64,000 nucleotides of DNA. Origin: Vitrella brassicaformis CCMP3155 (lineage: Eukaryota > Protista > Chromerida). The first letter of the stretch is position 1, and every line of letters starts with the position of its first letter. Position numbers and translations under genes: made by a program. The notes under the pieces are model-generated. The model was not told where the DNA came from. It saw only the letters and a program-made list of their open reading frames with translations, and made no database searches. Below are positions 3,831 through 50,500 of the stretch, one piece after another. The stretch covers positions 153,122 to 217,121 of the forward strand of contig CDMY01001057.1 in the NCBI GenBank assembly GCA_001179505.1, written 5' to 3'.

Positions 3831-4335
3831 CTGTGTGTCCTCATCATAGCCCCGGAGCACAGCACACATCGCTGTCCTCCGCCTGCCCTGCGTGTCTGTG
3901 GGTCTGCGTGGAGTGGAGGAGGTGCATACCGCTGTTTTTGCCGTCCTTGATGCCGCTTTGCAATGTGCAACTTCATGCCAGGTGTGTGCTGACTCCTTGC
4001 GCACATTTGTGGACATCCGGAGCAGATATTTTTGGCGGGGAATTTTGAGAATCATGCCACGAGGCAGATCGCCAAACCCCAGAAACCCTTCGCCTCGCCA
4101 GCCTTCGCCTTTTCGCGCCTTTGAGCGGCGCTGCGTCAGCCTTGCGCGTGTGAGCATCCGATGTGATGATCCCCCTGTCCATCCTGTCAGTTTCGCCCAG
4201 TACACCCAGTGCGTGATCTGCCCATCCTCCCGCCTCTGAGCAGCAGGGGATCTCACACAGGGAGTGCACCCGTCAGCTCACACACGCATCGGCGCCCGCT
4301 GTCTCGCGTGCGCGCCAGAGGGAAGGAGAGAGGAC

Positions 4336-11663: not shown

Positions 11664-14600
11664 CTAGGGTTTCTTGAGTCCGTATTTCTCGGGCTGGAAG
11701 ATGTCCTTGATGACCGCATCAACCACCTCTTGCAACTGAAACACACACACACACACACAGAGACACCCACACACACACGGTGGTTGCTGCCTGGAGTATG
11801 GTCACTGACTGACAGATTGGCTGACCTCGACGCGCGCCTTGGCGGGGTCCGATGACGACATCTCAGAGTACCACTTGAGCTTCGGCTCAGTGCCTGACAC
11901 ACATACACACACACACAGACCATTTACCGACACACCACACCCACGGTGTGCATGTGATGTCAACCCACCACCCTCCCAGTCACCCTCCCTGTCACCTACC
12001 GGACGTGCGGGCCGTCAGTGTGGCGCCGTTCTCGAACGTCAGTGTGACCTGACCACACACACAATCACACAGGCAGACAGCAGACACACACAAGATGCAC
12101 CCACAGTCTCACCACATCGCCCCCCCCCCTCTCACACCTCTCACACACGCGTACCGTACCATTTGTGAGGTGGCTGTGAGTGGGAAGGTGCATTTCTTGT
12201 CAGGTTTGGTGGAGTCGTATCCGACGGTGACGTCTCGGATGGCGGTGACCTTGAACTTGCCCAGCTGCCACTTGTACTGGCCGTTGTTGCGGAACTCGTC
12301 GAAGATGGCCTTGAAGGTCGGCGGGTCGTAGCACAGGAAATAAGCGTTGTTCGTCACGAAGTAACCGTACCTATACACACACACACAGGCAGACAGAGGC
12401 GTGTGTGGGGTGTGATGGGTGTGATGGGTGTGAGGAGGAGGGTGGTTCCTTACTTCTTTCGGAGTTCGTCGAGTTTGTCGTGTACGGTTTTGCCCTGTGC
12501 GTAGAGCTCGCATGCCATCTCGACCCACACGCCGGATGCCGACACGCCGTCCTTGTCCGCAACCTTCTCGCTCAGCTGGTAGCCTGCACCACACACAGCC
12601 ACACATACACGTGTGTGTGACACAGTGGCGTGTGGTGCGAGGCTGGCGGGGTGGGTGCGGTGCAGGTAAGGAAGGTACCGAGTGCCTCTTCGTATGCCAG
12701 AAGGTGCTCGAATTGCTCCTTGTTGCGGACCTCCATCGACTTGTTGGCCATCCACTTGAAGCCCGTCATCGTGTCCTGCAGGACATCCAAGATGCAATGC
12801 ACATGCCGTAATCAGACGAGACGAGCAGCTCGCCTTTTTGTGTGCTTGTGTTGTGTTGGTGCTTCCCTCCCTGACCTCGAATCGACAGCCCTCAGTCTCG
12901 GCGAGTTTCTTGAGCATGCGGGACGACACAGCCGAACAGATGAACAGCATGCTCGCTGACCCGCCGACACACATAGACACACACATACACACGTGACAGT
13001 CACACCATGGGTACATGGGTGCGCGTGTGTGTGTGTGTGTGTGTGAGGTACATGCGGGAAGTCCCTTCTCCTTGAAGGCCTGGAACTGGTATGCGCCGAA
13101 CAGAATGCCCAACTCGTCGCCATGGAAAATGTGCCACTTGCCGCTGACAAAAACGGAACACAAACACGCATCCATCCATCCGCTTTTTTGTCGTGTGTGT
13201 GTGTGTCTGTGTGTGGCACGCACTCCTTGGTCTTCTCAGCAGCGGCGAATCGGTCGGCGTCCGGGTCGTTGGCGATGACCATGGGGGAGCCCTCCTTGTC
13301 GGCCAAGGCCATGGCCAAATCCTGCCATCCAGTCACACGCGCACGTGGTCGGTTGGTGGATCGGTCCTTCCTTGTGCTGACTGACTGACCAGTGCGCCCT
13401 TCTCCTCAGGGTTGGGGAACGACACCTGCGATGCCATGCACACCACACAAGATCACACACACACACGCACTCAGCCACGCTGGTGGTGGATGTGTCCGTA
13501 TGTGATGTGTCTGGTGTGTGTGTGTGTGTCGCATGGCATAATCATACGGTGGAGAACTCAGGGTCGGGGTCACGCTGCTGCGGCACTGGTACCAGTAGAT
13601 AGATGAGGACACACACATACACACACAGACACGCAGACACACATGACACCACATGGCACGACGTGGGCATGGAAGAGCAAGGAGGACAGGGGAGCTCAGC
13701 TGTGCGTACCGACGATGAGGTTTTTGAATCCGAACTTCTCGACTATCTGACTCACAAACGGGTAACCCACACCTAAACACACACACACACGCGTAGGGAG
13801 AAATGCATCATCACATGCACGTGCGGTCGCCACCTCACCGTGCATGGCCGTGTAGACGATCTTGAGGTTGCTCTTGGCAGTGGCCTCGCTGTCAGAGAAT
13901 GCGAGCACAGCACACAGATGGACGACGGCTGTCATGCTGTCTGTGGTAGTGTGTGTACGTGTGTGTGTGTGGTAACTTACGGCTTTCGGGCGAGGTCCTT
14001 TGGGATTTCCGTCATGTAGCTGCCCACAGACTCGTCGTACAAGTCGACTATCTTGGAACTGAGAGGCACATGCGAGACAGACAGATACATACAGCTTGGT
14101 CAGTCAGTGTGCATGTTGTGTGTGTGCGGCTGGCTGCGTAGGTACGTGTCTTTGAGGAGTCCGGTGTTAGCGTCGAGTAGTTGGTCAACGCCCTCCCACT
14201 GGTTGAGGTTGGCCATGATGCACTCGGAGATGTGCTCGTCAACCGGAGGGATGATCTGAGGAACATGTATACACACACCACACCAGACAGCACCCAGACA
14301 GACAGATACTTCCCTTCGTTCCCATGGAGACGTCCCACGCCCCACCACCCAACCCACCTGAGCGCCGTTGTCGCCGTAAACCTTGTAGCCTGCAAGGCAT
14401 GCGACACACACAACACCACCAACACGAAACTGCACAAGTTCTCGTCTGTCAGGGGGTGTGTGTGCGCCGTGTATATATAGGATACTGTGCCTACCGTTGT
14501 CGATTTTGGGGTTGTGCGAGGCGGTGACCATGACGCCGCACGACGCATGGCGGGCCTTGGTGGCGTAAGCCTGAACACCATTCATGTGTTCACGCGAGGG

Positions 14601-15452
14601 AGTCAGCGAGTGAGGTCACACACGTGGTCGCATGGTATGTTTGCGTCTCGTACGTACGTACGAACCACCATGGGTGTGGCGACGGTCTTGAGGTAGAGGT
14701 ACACCTTGAACCCCTTGGACAGAAACACCGCAGCGGTCACGTGGGCATACCTACACACACACACACACACACACATAAGACATGGATGCAGAGGCTTGTC
14801 TGTCTGTGTATCTGTGTGTCTGTGTGTGCTCACCGCTGTGAGTTGTGCCGTCCGTCGAGTCCGATGACAACGCCGCGCTCCTTGGCCATGTCGCCCAGAG
14901 ACTTCAACACATACGTGCAGAGACCCTGACGGAGGGACACACACACCCACACACACGCATCCATGCGCCGAGGCTCCTTCCTTCACCGCCCGCATGCATG
15001 CGTGTAGGCACCTGTGAGGTCTGGAGCACGACCACGTCGTTCATGCGGTTGAAGCCAGCACCCATGTTGCCGCGGAGACCAGCCTGAACCAACACATGTT
15101 GCACAGACGGCGTGTACCATCCACATGCCATGCAGCAGGGCAGGTGTGGTGAGCCCGGCTGACCGTGCCGAACGCCAGTCGCTTGCAGAGCCGGTTCTTG
15201 AGCTCGTCCATGTCGCCCTTGTCCACTATCGCCTGCACATCACACACATGCGCCGATACGCGCATCTCTCTCCCATCCGTCTGTCTGTCACGTCACATGC
15301 ACCCGATTTCGACGCCTTTCGCCCACCTTGAGTTCGTCCTGCGTCTGCTTCCTCTTGTCCATGCCGTACCACTCCTGCAGGTGGGTGCGGGTGGTCAGAT
15401 CAGACACCTTCTCGGCGATGGCCGCCACCTCACTCGCGGGCAACAGCGACAT
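11664..15452 (-). CDS. PGM2: Phosphoglucomutase-2 / phosphopentomutase (alpha-D-phosphohexomutase), multi-exon
   Basis: RLAFGT|AGLRGNMGAGFNRMND, catalytic TASHNP (~14500-14530), YTAMHG, metal loop ANDPDADR, YEEALG, DKDGVSA; C-terminus IFQPEKYGLKKP*. About 20 GT-AG introns. Confidence 0.93.
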
Positions 15453-15557: not shown

Positions 15558-15590
15558 GAGGGTTTGGGGCCAGGGTTTAGGGTCTAGGGT
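15558..15590 (-). promoter_or_regulatory. Degenerate telomere-like (ACCCTNN)x4 telo-box-type motif about 110-140 nt upstream of the PGM2 ATG
   Basis: Minus strand reads accctag accctaa accctgg ccccaa accctcg; the 21-mer at 15570-15590 is identical to the reverse complement of 63943-63963. Regulatory role is inference. Confidence 0.5.
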
Positions 15591-15775
15591 ACGATCTCTC
15601 TATTACCAACTCGTATCCACCCACCACCCACCAGTTCGTCCGCCGTCTTTTCGGGTTAGACGCTGCGGCAAATTTCCGCGCTGCCTGTGCTGGAGAGCTG
15701 CGGTCCGGGGAGGCGCGGTTGCGGAGATATGAGCGGAAATGCGTTTCGCGCGCGGAGCAATCACAACCGCCCGAG

Positions 15776-15848
15776 GTCCACATAGCGCAGTGGATGAGGC
15801 GTCCAGCGGGGGTACAGAAAGTCGCGGGTTCGAGTCCCTGGCGTGTAT
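15776..15848 (+). pseudogene. tRNA-derived sequence (Pol III type-2 promoter, SINE-head-like), copy 1
   Basis: A box TAGCGCAGTGG at 15783-15793, B box GGTTCGAGTCC at 15827-15837 (44-nt spacing); D stem GCGC/GCGT pairs; anticodon and acceptor stems do not close; T4 at 15889-15892. Confidence 0.6.
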
Positions 15849-16014
15849 GTTATGCCCACCACCACCACCCACCAAATCGTCCGCCGTCTTTTCATGTCAG
15901 ACGCTGCGGGAGCTTCGCGCGTTGCCTGTGCTGAAGAGCTGCGGTCCGGGGAGGCGCGGGTGCGGAGATCGGAGCGGAAATGCGTTTCGCGCGCGGAGGG
16001 GAGCGGTTCACCCC

Positions 16015-16075
16015 GCCAGCATAGCGCAGCGGGTGACGTTTAATGAAAGTCTCGGGTTCGAATCGCAGAGCGGTC
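16015..16075 (+). pseudogene. tRNA-derived sequence, copy 2 (more degraded)
   Basis: A box TAGCGCAGCGG at 16022-16032, B box GGTTCGAATCG at 16055-16065; spacing 33 nt, anticodon arm largely deleted. Confidence 0.45.
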
Positions 16076-16178
16076 CTGTACATATTGAGCTCGCACAGTC
16101 CGCCTCCCTGATACAGCTTTCCAGAACGCCCGCGGGTGCGCGGGCCAAACTCTAGTCTTTCCGAGCGGAGCTGAACGC

Positions 16179-17045
16179 ATGATTGAGGACGCAAACACGG
16201 CATCATTCACGAGGGCACGAGCGGCTGTCTCTGCTCTTCTTTTCGGCTCTGACGTCCCCATCAGTCACCCTTCACAGGTGAGTGGAGGAGATGGAGCAGC
16301 ACCACGCCATCATTCACGTACACAATTGTGCACCCCCTGCCTTCAGGTCACTTCTCGCCGGGCTGCTATCTGCACCCAACGCACCCATCGCCGCTCCAGG
16401 AGATCAACGTCTTCGGCCGAATGGGCGTCATGGTCAAGCGCGACGACAAGCTCCATCCCCACATCCAGGAAGTTCTTCAGCCTGCACAGAGCTGCCTTTG
16501 CTGCGGCCCTGGAACGTGGCGTGGACTTTCGGCCTCTTGCGAATGCTGAATACGCTAAGTAGGGGACGAGAGCGGTCTGGTGGATAGATAGGTGCTGGTG
16601 CATGCGTCCGCGTCTGCATCCGCGTGTGTGTGTTTGTCCGGTGCCTGCCCTCCTGGATGCAGGCATTTTGGTGGAAATGCCGGCTCGCCACCGTTCCCCG
16701 AGACTCTCATGCCGCAGGAGGAAAATGTTCTGTTCATTCCACAGGTACCTCCCATCCACGCACACAACACATCACATAACACCACACCACACCCACCACC
16801 CCTTTGTGTGTATGTCTGTGCTCCGGAGGGCGCCAGTGGTTTGGCTGAGGAAGGCGTGGCCCCTCTCGCCGAGGAGCTTCTGACACAGCTAGCTGCCTTC
16901 ACCACCACCAACGGCAGCAGTAACAGTCGTGTTACCTGGTTGCACTGGGTCGACCGCCCTGTTTGTTTCTCGCCCGCCACATCACATGCAGACCAGGAAA
17001 GATGCTGACGTGGTGGTGGTGCCTGTGGTGGGCGGGCGACTGGGC
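16179..17045 (+). pseudogene. Broken D-cysteine desulfhydrase / ACC deaminase-family PLP enzyme
   Basis: HPSPLQ...VMVKRDDKLHPHI (16433-16465) joins out of frame to RKFFSL with the SGNK PLP-lysine motif missing; later exons FIPQ|GASGLAEEGVAPLAEELLTQL and DADVVVVP; central part absent. Confidence 0.6.
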
Positions 17046-17688
17046 GTACATACATGGCCAGGCAGACAGATGACCCGACTCGATCTCTCTCTCTGCGATA
17101 ATCTATGGTCTTTCCCTCGTTGTAGGTCATGACGTCTTCCCCTCGATTGCAGTGCCGTCCACCCCACCCCGCTGTCCGCCTTCGGCGAGCCCACCCAGGG
17201 CAACTATCATCAGCTGTGGCAAGATACAAGGGCCTTGCTGTACTGTAGTGTAGAACGGTTGTCGATAGGTCTGCCTGCCTGCCTGCCTGCCTGCCTGCAT
17301 GTGTGTGGATGGATGGATGGCTTGACGGATGGATGGAATGTGTACATCTGTCCCATTCAGTCCTTTTTGTGTCATGGGCATGCATTATGCAACGTGCCAT
17401 GCATCATAAACTGTTATCAACCAAAACAGACAAAACGTCACGCAACCGACAACGAAAACGCACGCAGCAGAAAACCAGAAAGGATCCACCAGCATGTATC
17501 CATGTATCCAGCACACAAACACTACAGCACCATATCGGCCAGGGGATTCGCGACGATGGGTGGATGGATGGGATGGAGGGAAGAGTGGCTGTAGCTGTGC
17601 GTGAGAATAGCGAGGTCTCAGTAGTGGTGCGGGTGGAGTAGGTGGATGGGGGCAGAGGAAAACGGCCAGCCCCCCCCCCCCCCCCCCC

Positions 17689-23953: not shown

Positions 23954-24223
23954 GATGGATGTATGTAATGCAGAGGCCATACGGACCCCCACGAGAAAGG
24001 GACGCGAGCTTTGTTGGATCGTCTCCCCGAATGAAAACAACAAACAACTCTTTGCCTTGATGATCAATATGGCAAGGAGCATCGCGTTCGTTGGGGGCGC
24101 TGAGCCTCGTGTGCGTTCTCATCTTCTGACTACTAGTGCCTCCACCATTCATGAGATGCATCTGCGTGTTGTTGGCATGCTACAGCATCCTGGCCTGTAT
24201 ATGTATTCAGCACTCATCGTTCT

Positions 24224-47599: not shown

Positions 47600-50500
47600 T
47601 CATGTGGCTGTTCGGATGCCGTCGACGGTGCTGGCGTAGTGGGCCTCCTGATTGCACATCGGGCACTTGAGCTGGGCGTCCCGGGCGACGTCATCAGGCA
47701 CTCGCCGCTGCAGGGCCTCCAGCCGCGCCTTCTCCCTCTTGGCCGCATCGTGGGCCGCCGCCATCTCACGCCAGCAACCCTCACACAGACACTTCTGCAC
47801 ACACACACACACAATGAAGTCAATGAGATGTCATTCTGTGTGTGGTCGCTGACCTGCAGACACGGGAAGAAGACCACGGTCGGCCGCTTGGAGATGCACA
47901 TGACGCAGGTGCCCTCCCCGCCATCGCCAGAGGCAGCGGCAGCGGCAGCCGTCTCCTCCTTCTCGAGTGCAGCATGACGCACAGCGGCCTCTTTGGACAG
48001 CTCTCGCAGCTCTTGATTGGCCTTCTTGATGTCGCGCTTGAAGGCGTCCACCGCTGCGATGCTCGTGAGCGACTCGAGACGAGTAGGGGTCAGCCTGACG
48101 ACGGGCAAGCAAACAGACAGAGGGAGAGGCGCATGACGGCCCGTCTGTGTGTGTCTGTGGGCCTTTGGTTACCGTTTGTTTGCCTCTTGCTGCAGTGTGT
48201 GGTGCTCTTGCTCGAGTGTCTGGAGGGCCGCCTCGGCCTTGATGTGCTCCTCCGTCATCCGAGAGATGTCACACTCCAACCTGACACACACACACACACA
48301 CACACGTGTGCAGGGGTATGGCTGCTGGTTGGCATAGGGAGCGCTCTGTCTTACTGGTCTATGTCACATTGGGTGTGCTCTGTGGCCTCGAGCAGCTGCT
48401 CCTCAGTCGACGACTCGTTCAGCAACACACTCATCTCATGACACACTGGCACGCCACACCTGATTGACGCACACACAACGGAGCTATCACACCAATGGAA
48501 TGAAGATGGCAGTCCCTCTCTCCCCATCCTACCCGTCTGCAGAGGAGGAAGCAGCAGCAGCGGCAGCGGCCGGGGCGTTCTGTTGCTCGGCTGCGGGTGC
48601 CTTCTTGGCTTTGAGTGCGCCGCTCTGCAGCTGGTTGGCACGCCGCTCTGCGGCTACGAGCAGCTCGTCGAGCCGCTCCTCCTCGCGGCTGATCTTGGCC
48701 TCCAGCTCACGCACTTCAGCAGCAGTGGACAAGGATGCCAACACATCCTGGCTCAGACTGCATCAACAGCACACAGAACAGAGCCGCTGTGTGGGCCCTC
48801 TCCTTGTGTGTATCGCTCACTTGGGTGTGACGTATCTGAGTCGTCGTATGTTTGTCTTGAGCTCCTTGACGCGGTCGGTCGCCCGCCGACGGGCCTCAAG
48901 CACATCGCCGTACTGAGCCTCCAGACTGCTCACAGGCATGGACGATACACAGACCAACACGCGACAGTGTGGCTGCGTCAAACACATACACGGCCGTGTG
49001 GTGTCCGTCTGACCTCTCCTTCTTGTCGATGGCGTCATTCAGCTCAGCCCGCAGCTGAGCCACGCCATCAGCCGGAGGGAAGCTGCACACACATTGGCCA
49101 CACTGTCAGCGAAAGGCCACACAGCGGACCGATTGTGTCTGCTGCCTTACTCATCCGGTCGGGTTGACGGCTGGGCTGTGGAGGGCCGGTCGGCCGGTGT
49201 GGTGCTGACCGTCGATGGGACCGGCGGGTCGACAAACGATGACCTGATGGATGGATGGATCACACACACAACACGGCACCATCAGTTGAGTCCATGTGGT
49301 TAAGGGCCCTCTGTGTGACTTACGATGAGCTGAGCGGCTGGTAGTAAGGGTCAGCCAACAAGTGGCTGGCCGGTGCGCCATCAGCAGGCCGGAGGGCGGT
49401 GGAGGGAATGGGCGGGGGGCCCATGTCATCCGGAGGCTCATGGCTAAGGAGATGTTGCTGCTGGTGGTCACTCGGGGCGTCAAACAGGGCCGGCTCGACA
49501 CTGCAGACCACACAAGTACAGATGTGTCGACGTGAAGGTGTCGGCGGGCCTGTCTGTACCTGTCGTCATGTGTGTCTGGCGGGCAGCTCGGCGTAGCAGC
49601 TTCATCCGTCGCATCATCTACCTCTTGAGTCTCGTGCTGTGTGTTGTTACCACCCTCAGTCTCCCCACTGGCTGGCTCGGCCTCTGCTTGCTGAGCCGCT
49701 GCCGTCAAACGCTAAAGGCAATGACACACACAAAAATGTCAGGTGTCATGGCTTCATGTGCAGGTCTCCGTGAGAGCAGCAGTACCTTGAGTCTCTTCTG
49801 TTCTCGTTTCCTGGCCGCCCTCTCCTCCTTCTCACGCTCCATCTTCTTCTCACGCAGCAGCTCGGCCTCGGCAGCCTTCCGACGCGACTCGAGATGAGCA
49901 ACCAACACATCCACACACAACTGACCATACAACAGACAAGTAGACGGACAACCTGTCACTGGTGCGCCTTGATGCCTGCTGGCTGACCTTACAGCCAAAG
50001 TTGCGTGCGACGTCGGGTGCTGTCAGCCGAACCTTGTTGACCGCCTCAGCGTCGACTCCCTTCGCGAGGAGCCACTCGATCATCCTAGACCACCCATTGA
50101 TGGCCTCCAGGTGCAGCAGAGAGTTCCCCTGCCCGTCACGGCAGTGGATGTTGAGCACGGACCCCTTCCTCCGCCCTCCCTTGCCCTTGGTCGGTGCGCT
50201 CCGCATGAGACCGTGGCGATCGAGCACCTCCAGGGTGGCCACTGCACGCGACTGCAGCGCCTTCTCCTTCGCCTCCCTTGTCGCTATGCCAACCGCCTCC
50301 TCTTCTCCCCCCTCTTGCACTTGTGAATCGGCACACTTGCCTTTGCTGGTGGCCTTCTTGCGGCTCTTGCGGCTGCTGACCTTGGGCTGTGGAGGGGGCT
50401 GGGAAGCTGTCACACAAGAGTCTCAACACGAGCTGATCTGGCTCAATCGATCACTAATTCACCTTCGGTATCTTGGCTGTCTTGCGGCAGCTCCTCCGGT

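Follow-up and report, generated by a model that had tools for sequence, protein, structure and literature searches.

Canonical non-autonomous Helitrons (the HLE1 type, such as HelibatN of bats and Helitron-N of plants) have TC and CTAG ends, insert between A and T without a duplication, lack terminal inverted repeats, have no coding capacity, and are more variable in their 5' region than at their 3' end. In non-autonomous elements of the DINE-1 or Helentron type, found in insects and bivalves, the interior consists of tandem repeats; these are HLE2 elements, which have terminal inverted repeats and insert between T and T. The diagnostic features against which we read the ends described here were taken from PMC4778049 and PMC11417382: for HLE1, a 5' TC, a 3' CTRR, a subterminal hairpin, A|T insertion without duplication, no terminal inverted repeats, unrelated flanks, and a RepHel element in the genome with the same termini; for HLE2, short terminal inverted repeats and a T-T target. 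Helitrons can also capture promoters, as described for HelibatN3 (PMC4778049).

In this report, we describe a 561-nt stretch of the Vitrella brassicaformis genome that is, in our judgement, probably an old and immobile member of a low-copy family of non-autonomous, canonical (HLE1-type) Helitrons. The family resembles HelibatN and plant Helitron-N in all of the respects listed above, and its GC-rich palindrome lies 10 nt before the 3' end, compared with 11 nt in Helraiser. It differs from them in being tiny (about 12 copies) and GC-rich, in the lack of a detected partner, in its one or two tandem units of ~240 nt with tRNA-promoter-like boxes, and in a target that has G at position -2 as well (GA|T). 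An internal array whose unit number differs between copies (1 or 2) is shared with the DINE-1/Helentron type, whereas the ends are those of HLE1. With tRNA-derived SINEs and tRNA genes, the element shares an A-box and a B-box consensus 33 nt apart, but it has no detectable cloverleaf, its boxes are not 5'-terminal, it has neither tail nor target-site duplication, and its combination of A and B boxes occurs in no genuine tRNA of the genome. As in Helitrons that spread regulatory motifs, with HelibatN3 as the example, candidate cis-elements (the B box and AAGCTCGC-type motifs) lie directly upstream of a start codon, any regulatory activity here being conjectural.

Helitrons as a class are not new in the Vitrella genome. 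Woo et al. 2015 (PMC4501334) reported 1.5 Mb of transposable elements and a median intergenic length of 92 nt, and their Supplementary file 2 lists 18,147 bp of Helitron and 0 bp of putative SINE. A preliminary description of this DNA, made from the letters alone, held that such a family would be notable in a free-living relative of the largely transposon-poor parasitic apicomplexans; in view of this earlier listing, and of the plentiful RepHel genes in the assembly, that claim was overstated. Our full-text literature searches returned no paper on Helitrons in Vitrella or Chromera, or on Helitrons with tRNA-like boxes. What is gained is the curation, in a chromerid genome, of a non-autonomous Helitron family whose ends are defined and which prefers GA|T targets; this would mean that canonical Helitron mobilisation has acted in a free-living relative of apicomplexans. 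As it stands, the finding is an annotation-level result, well supported and fairly ordinary.

The element between two divergent genes

The window (the whole 64-kb stretch analysed, part of scaffold C1057) was compared with the CCMP3155 genome (72,700,666 bp, 1064 scaffolds), and its features are collected in Table 1. The window copy begins with TCTCTCTATTACC at 15595, directly after the A at 15594, and towards the other end six bases (CAAACT) separate the palindrome, which ends at 16145, from the CTAG at 16152. Folded as single-stranded DNA, the palindrome reaches -10.5 kcal/mol (z = -2.1). The preliminary description had read from the sequence an A|TC start, the palindrome, a CTAG, a following T, and no target-site duplication, and every one of these is present where it was placed.

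Table 1. Coordinates of the element, its parts, and the adjoining host features in the window.
Feature	Position	Strand	Remarks
Start codon, upstream divergent phosphoglucomutase gene	15450..15452	-	Lies 142 nt from the element's 5' end
Host A, the A of the A|T target	15594	+	A at -1 in 9/9 5' junctions
Whole element, probable non-autonomous Helitron copy, two-unit family member	15595..16155	+	561 nt; nine 5' junctions and nine 3' ends in the family
5' terminal leader, TC start	15595..15616	+	Degenerate; ~12 nt shorter than the family form TCTCTCTATACTCCACTAC... (junction alignment)
Internal unit 1	15617..15857	+	CCACC-type run, conserved ~140-nt module, then tRNA-like cassette
A-box consensus match TAGCGCAGTGG, unit 1	15783..15793	+	Strict match; conserved in family copies
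B-box consensus match GGTTCGAGTCC, unit 1	15827..15837	+	Strict match; most conserved interior island across subfamilies
Internal unit 2	15858..16100	+	Decayed cassette; 13 nt deleted; A-box-like 16022-16032, B-box-like 16055-16064
TTGAGCTCGCAC, variant of the enriched 10-mer	16085..16096	+	~90 nt upstream of the downstream ATG
3' subterminal hairpin GCCCGCG-GGTG-CGCGGGC	16128..16145	+	7-bp GC stem, 4-nt loop
3' terminal CTAG (CTRR motif)	16152..16155	+	Ends 10 nt after the hairpin
Host T directly 3' of the element	16156	+	T at +1 in 5/7 readable family ends
ATG, downstream gene	16179..16181	+	23 nt past the 3' end of the element

The gene on the minus strand upstream is a phosphoglucomutase gene according to a Pfam match (PF02878) in the exon at 14100-14585, and the open frames tried from the first exons of the downstream gene have no Pfam match. 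The downstream gene has a paralogue at C779:9689-10850, 74-75% identical and matching window positions 16228-17224. Between the two divergent start codons, the element occupies 561 of 726 nt (77%), so that the core promoter or 5' UTR of the downstream gene probably lies within the element or is read through it. The locus offers a concrete example of a divergent promoter that consists for the most part of a probable transposon, in a genome whose intergenic spacers have a median of 92 nt.

Copies, ends, and units of the family

A search of the genome with the 561-nt query, supplemented by pattern and follow-up searches, gave about 12 copies or fragments of the element. The query itself retrieved related copies on C529, C831, C794, C409, C227, and C602 and fragments on C334 and C541, and the additional searches contributed a diverged copy or fragment on C298 and B-type copies on C571 and C204. 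Element lengths across the family are 199, 360, 544, 561, 579, 619, and 785 nt. Two internal units are present in the window copy and in those on C529, C831, and C794, one in the 360-nt C409 copy, and only part of one in the 199-nt C602 copy. The 785-nt C227 copy (C227:258496-259280, minus strand) is a chimera in which a truncated A-type element is joined to a diverged B-type element; the B-type part has its own 5'-leader-like sequence and supplies the 3' end (...GCCCGCGCAACGCGCGGGCGAACGCTAG), and B-type 3' halves are also found at C571:274629-275105 and C204:66584-67463. Several copies show local rearrangements: the C794 copy has its 18-nt 5' terminus, TCCCTCTATACTCCACTA, duplicated in tandem at its start (1442-1477 of the extracted locus), in the C529 copy a (TTCG)5 microsatellite has expanded (1933-1960 of the extracted locus), and microsatellites, (TG)n and (TTGG)n, mark the points at which the C334 and C541 fragments break off. 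Pfam searches of the flanking frames of the other copies found only ankyrin repeats, beside the C831 copy.

The 5' junctions are uniform. In all nine, the TC start directly follows a flanking A (background A frequency 0.20), the leader takes the common form TC(T/C)CTCTATAC..., and a G stands at -2 in six, which gives the GA|T preference. Each of the nine 3' ends has the 7-bp GC hairpin and, after it, 9-10 bases, the last four being CTAG in eight and CTAT in the C409 copy. Eight copies have an identical hairpin stem, and that of C409 differs by a single G-for-C change; the loop takes several forms (GGTG, GACG, CACG, CGTG, GTG, or CAA), as expected from constraint on pairing. Searched for across the genome, the pattern of the hairpin, 5-9 nt, and CTAK has nine matches, all of them family members, and its reversed control has none. 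Of seven ends at which the next base could be read, five are followed by T, one by A, and one is ambiguous.

Similarity between copies stops at these ends: over the 50 nt outside either end, identity is 0.26, which is the random level, and over the 20-40 nt inside it is 0.70-0.77. The flanks of the window copy are single-copy in the genome, except for the paralogue of the downstream gene on C779, a scaffold on which the genome searches found no match to the element family. Direct repeats anchored at the junctions do not exceed 2 nt, and the family has no target-site duplication. A 3-bp TCT duplication was considered and rejected, because every full copy has TCT or TCC on the left, and three have ATT, TGT, or TGC on the right. 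Terminal inverted repeats are absent from the ends of the element and of the family, and the 3' ends carry no poly-A or simple-repeat tail. Metagenome contigs contain no exact match to the 24-mer predicted for an empty site and none to a 26-mer from the B-box region.

The Helitron reading had been set up beforehand as a test, in which many copies with TC and hairpin-CTAG ends, A and T on either side, and unrelated flanks would speak for it, and a single copy, homology past the proposed ends, target-site duplications, or poly-A tails would speak against it. The A at nine of nine junctions, the T at five of seven, and the shared ends in unrelated surroundings fall on the first side, and nothing on the second list was seen. 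The family thus has the 5' TC, 3' CTRR, subterminal hairpin, A|T insertion without duplication, absence of terminal inverted repeats, and unrelated flanks of HLE1, and it shows neither the short terminal inverted repeats nor the T-T target of HLE2. On the other side of the account are the low copy number, the one copy with A at +1, and the one ending in CTAT.

Self-comparison aligns 15621-15757 with 15862-15998 at 89% identity and a spacing of 241 nt, in agreement with the tandem units, each with an A/B-box cassette, that the preliminary description had reported; the boxes are strict in unit 1 and one mismatch away in unit 2. For the tRNA-like parts the spacing falls to 239 and 228 nt, owing to the loss of 13 nt there in unit 2. 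The same unit-to-unit junction is found in three copies (those of the window, C529, and C831) whose flanks are unrelated, which indicates that the two-unit composite moved whole and was not duplicated in place. A third occurrence of a 17-nt motif at 16238-16254 (14/17) was judged a chance match.

RepHel genes and the search for a partner element

A profile search places the Helitron_like_N domain (PF14214) at 14 sites in the genome, and at seven or more loci (C366, C200, C326, C227, C239, C347, and C314) a PIF1 match (PF05970) comes after it on that strand. The RepHel frame on C366 is intact over 801 aa (178 bits). The search for RepHel genes proposed earlier was productive as regards the genes themselves, of which there are at least seven loci, and came back empty as regards one bounded by the termini of the family. 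No autonomous element with these termini came up with genome-wide terminus patterns, nor when six RepHel regions, 13-20 kb each, were searched for the ends by blastn-short and fuzzy matching. The 19-nt 5' end (up to two mismatches) and the 3' end are confined genome-wide to family members, and the 11-mer ATCTCTCTATA, taken with the flanking A, has 27 matches against 21 in the control, which is near chance.

An autonomous RepHel family is represented by copies on C571 and C227 that are 94-99% identical, with homology that starts at GA|TCATCC..TATATGAATTTT, near position 3920 of the extracted C571 locus and near 14414, on the minus strand, of that from C227. This is a canonical A|TC 5' end, and the GA|TC start is common to it and the small family. 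In the C227 copy, the 3' boundary of the autonomous family is lost in a run of N. C227 also holds two or three tandem partial RepHel copies, and the sequence downstream of the C366 RepHel gene has no second copy in the genome.

The partner element has been lost, is unassembled, or resembles the family in only a few terminal bases, which is where the Helitron assignment is weakest. It is also what lends some weight to another reading, that a different or undescribed single-strand (HUH-type) transposon mimics Helitron ends, for example by way of an unusual Vitrella RepHel lineage (such as a GIY-YIG-ended or an HLE2-like one). We hold this to be unlikely, since the ends display all of the structural features of canonical HLE1 and those of HLE2 are missing.

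Under the canonical Helitron reading, we infer that a RepHel transposase supplied in trans would have nicked the donor at A|TC and that the strand would have been unwound 5' to 3' until the GC hairpin and the CTAG signal brought it to a stop. The single strand would then have integrated between an A and a T, with GA|T preferred in the family, and in the window the insertion site would have been the short divergent promoter between the phosphoglucomutase gene and its neighbour. The interior consists of one or two tandem units of ~240 nt, each ending in a putative decayed tRNA-related segment with A- and B-box consensus, and the two-unit form was itself mobilised.

Promoter-like boxes and dispersed motifs

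The 33-nt gap between the A and B boxes of unit 1 fits the 30-60 nt spacing of a Pol III type-2 promoter, a T4 run at 15889-15892 follows ~50 nt past the B box, and the one-mismatch versions in unit 2 begin at 16022 and 16055. On the plus strand of the window, which was the strand scanned, the strict B box is unique to this site, and the strict A box occurs once elsewhere, at 47632, with no B box and no tRNA call there. Across the family, the B-box island does not vary, the most diverged members included. The matches and their spacing cannot be chance.

These boxes led the preliminary description to propose a captured tRNA or SINE head, a proposal that is partly supported, by the A- and B-box motifs, with no cloverleaf and no parent tRNA found. 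ARAGORN at default settings calls no tRNA in the window or at the nine loci, and at thresholds of 70-90% its matches appear only at the rate seen in shuffled sequence. Rfam (E <= 10; RF00005 included) returns no match. A pattern search of the genome for a parent tRNA with the same A and B boxes returned family members only. A D-arm-like stem and an acceptor-like pairing are visible in several copies, and the acceptor-like pairing is not kept across copies. A structured RNA was considered and dropped, since nine units analysed with RNAalifold show no supporting covariation (term +2.01, unfavourable). On sequence grounds, the cassette is best described as a putative decayed tRNA-related segment that keeps the promoter-box consensus, and a role as Pol III promoter cargo is plausible at the level of motifs.

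The same consensus boxes at tRNA-like spacing, with the T4 run behind them, would suit a tRNA-derived, SINE-type retroposon that is transcribed by Pol III from the internal boxes and copied via RNA. Such a retroposon would carry its boxes at the 5' head, however, and here they lie ~190 nt farther in; a hairpin and CTAG stand where a tail would be expected, and target-site duplications are missing. The ARAGORN results leave such an element without a cloverleaf, and the published inventory has no SINE sequence in Vitrella (PMC4501334). We reject this reading, which is close to refuted.

A more far-reaching idea within the Helitron reading is that the A/B-box module may be selected cargo, with the Helitron seeding TFIIIC/Pol III sites (tDNA-like insulators or small-RNA promoters) and AAGCTCGC-type motifs into the very short divergent Pol II promoters of this alveolate with its compact genome. 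We think this rather improbable. If it were true, neighbouring genes, for example the one starting at 16179, would have been rewired. The conservation of the B box provides a candidate lead on transposon-borne Pol III/TFIIIC sites.

Both the boxes and the AAGCTCGC-type motifs figure in a further alternative, in which a host regulatory or non-coding RNA module reached several promoters through ectopic recombination or gene conversion and was maintained there by selection. The inspected copies do lie close to putative gene starts (here 23 nt from an ATG and 142 nt from that of the phosphoglucomutase gene), the B-box island and a few others are conserved in the most diverged members, and the element bears variants of a motif that is 7.5-fold enriched genome-wide. 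Recombination, however, leaves unexplained the sharp A|TC and CTAG|T boundaries at up to nine loci with random flanks, the Rfam and RNAalifold results give no sign of a structured RNA, and with a median intergenic length of 92 nt (PMC4501334), nearly any intergenic insertion falls near a gene start. We regard a host module as very unlikely and retain the Helitron reading.

The enriched motif is WAAGCTCGCM (mostly T/A-AAGCTCGCA), which has 2,313 matches in the genome against 309 in the reversed control, often as close doublets or inverted pairs. In the window, it occurs at 12504, 16087, 22037, 22054, 40386, 40400, 47334, 58019, and 59421 and on the minus strand at 24011 and 27326. Within the family, variants of it occur in the leader and where the unit ends (window 16085-16096). 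Outside the elements, TGCGAGCTTA lies 6-21 nt upstream of the 5' TC in the C227 copy, the C298 copy, and the autonomous element on C571. Because the 10-mer is over-represented genome-wide, we take its presence in these three flanks as that of a dispersed motif and not as element sequence, and we infer no homology past the 5' end. The simplest reading is that insertions landed in promoters containing the 10-mer, and WAAGCTCGCM is probably a dispersed cis-regulatory motif of Vitrella.

A second short motif lies beside the window copy. A telomere-repeat-like run, GGGTTTGGGGCCAGGGTTTAGGGTCTAGGG, spans 15559-15590 and ends 4 nt before the element; this distance, and that of 23 nt to the downstream ATG, agree with the preliminary description. 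The AAACCCT-type 7-mer occurs at chance frequency across the window (9 matches in 64 kb), and runs of this type are also found 5' of the C409 copy and 3' of the C298 copy.
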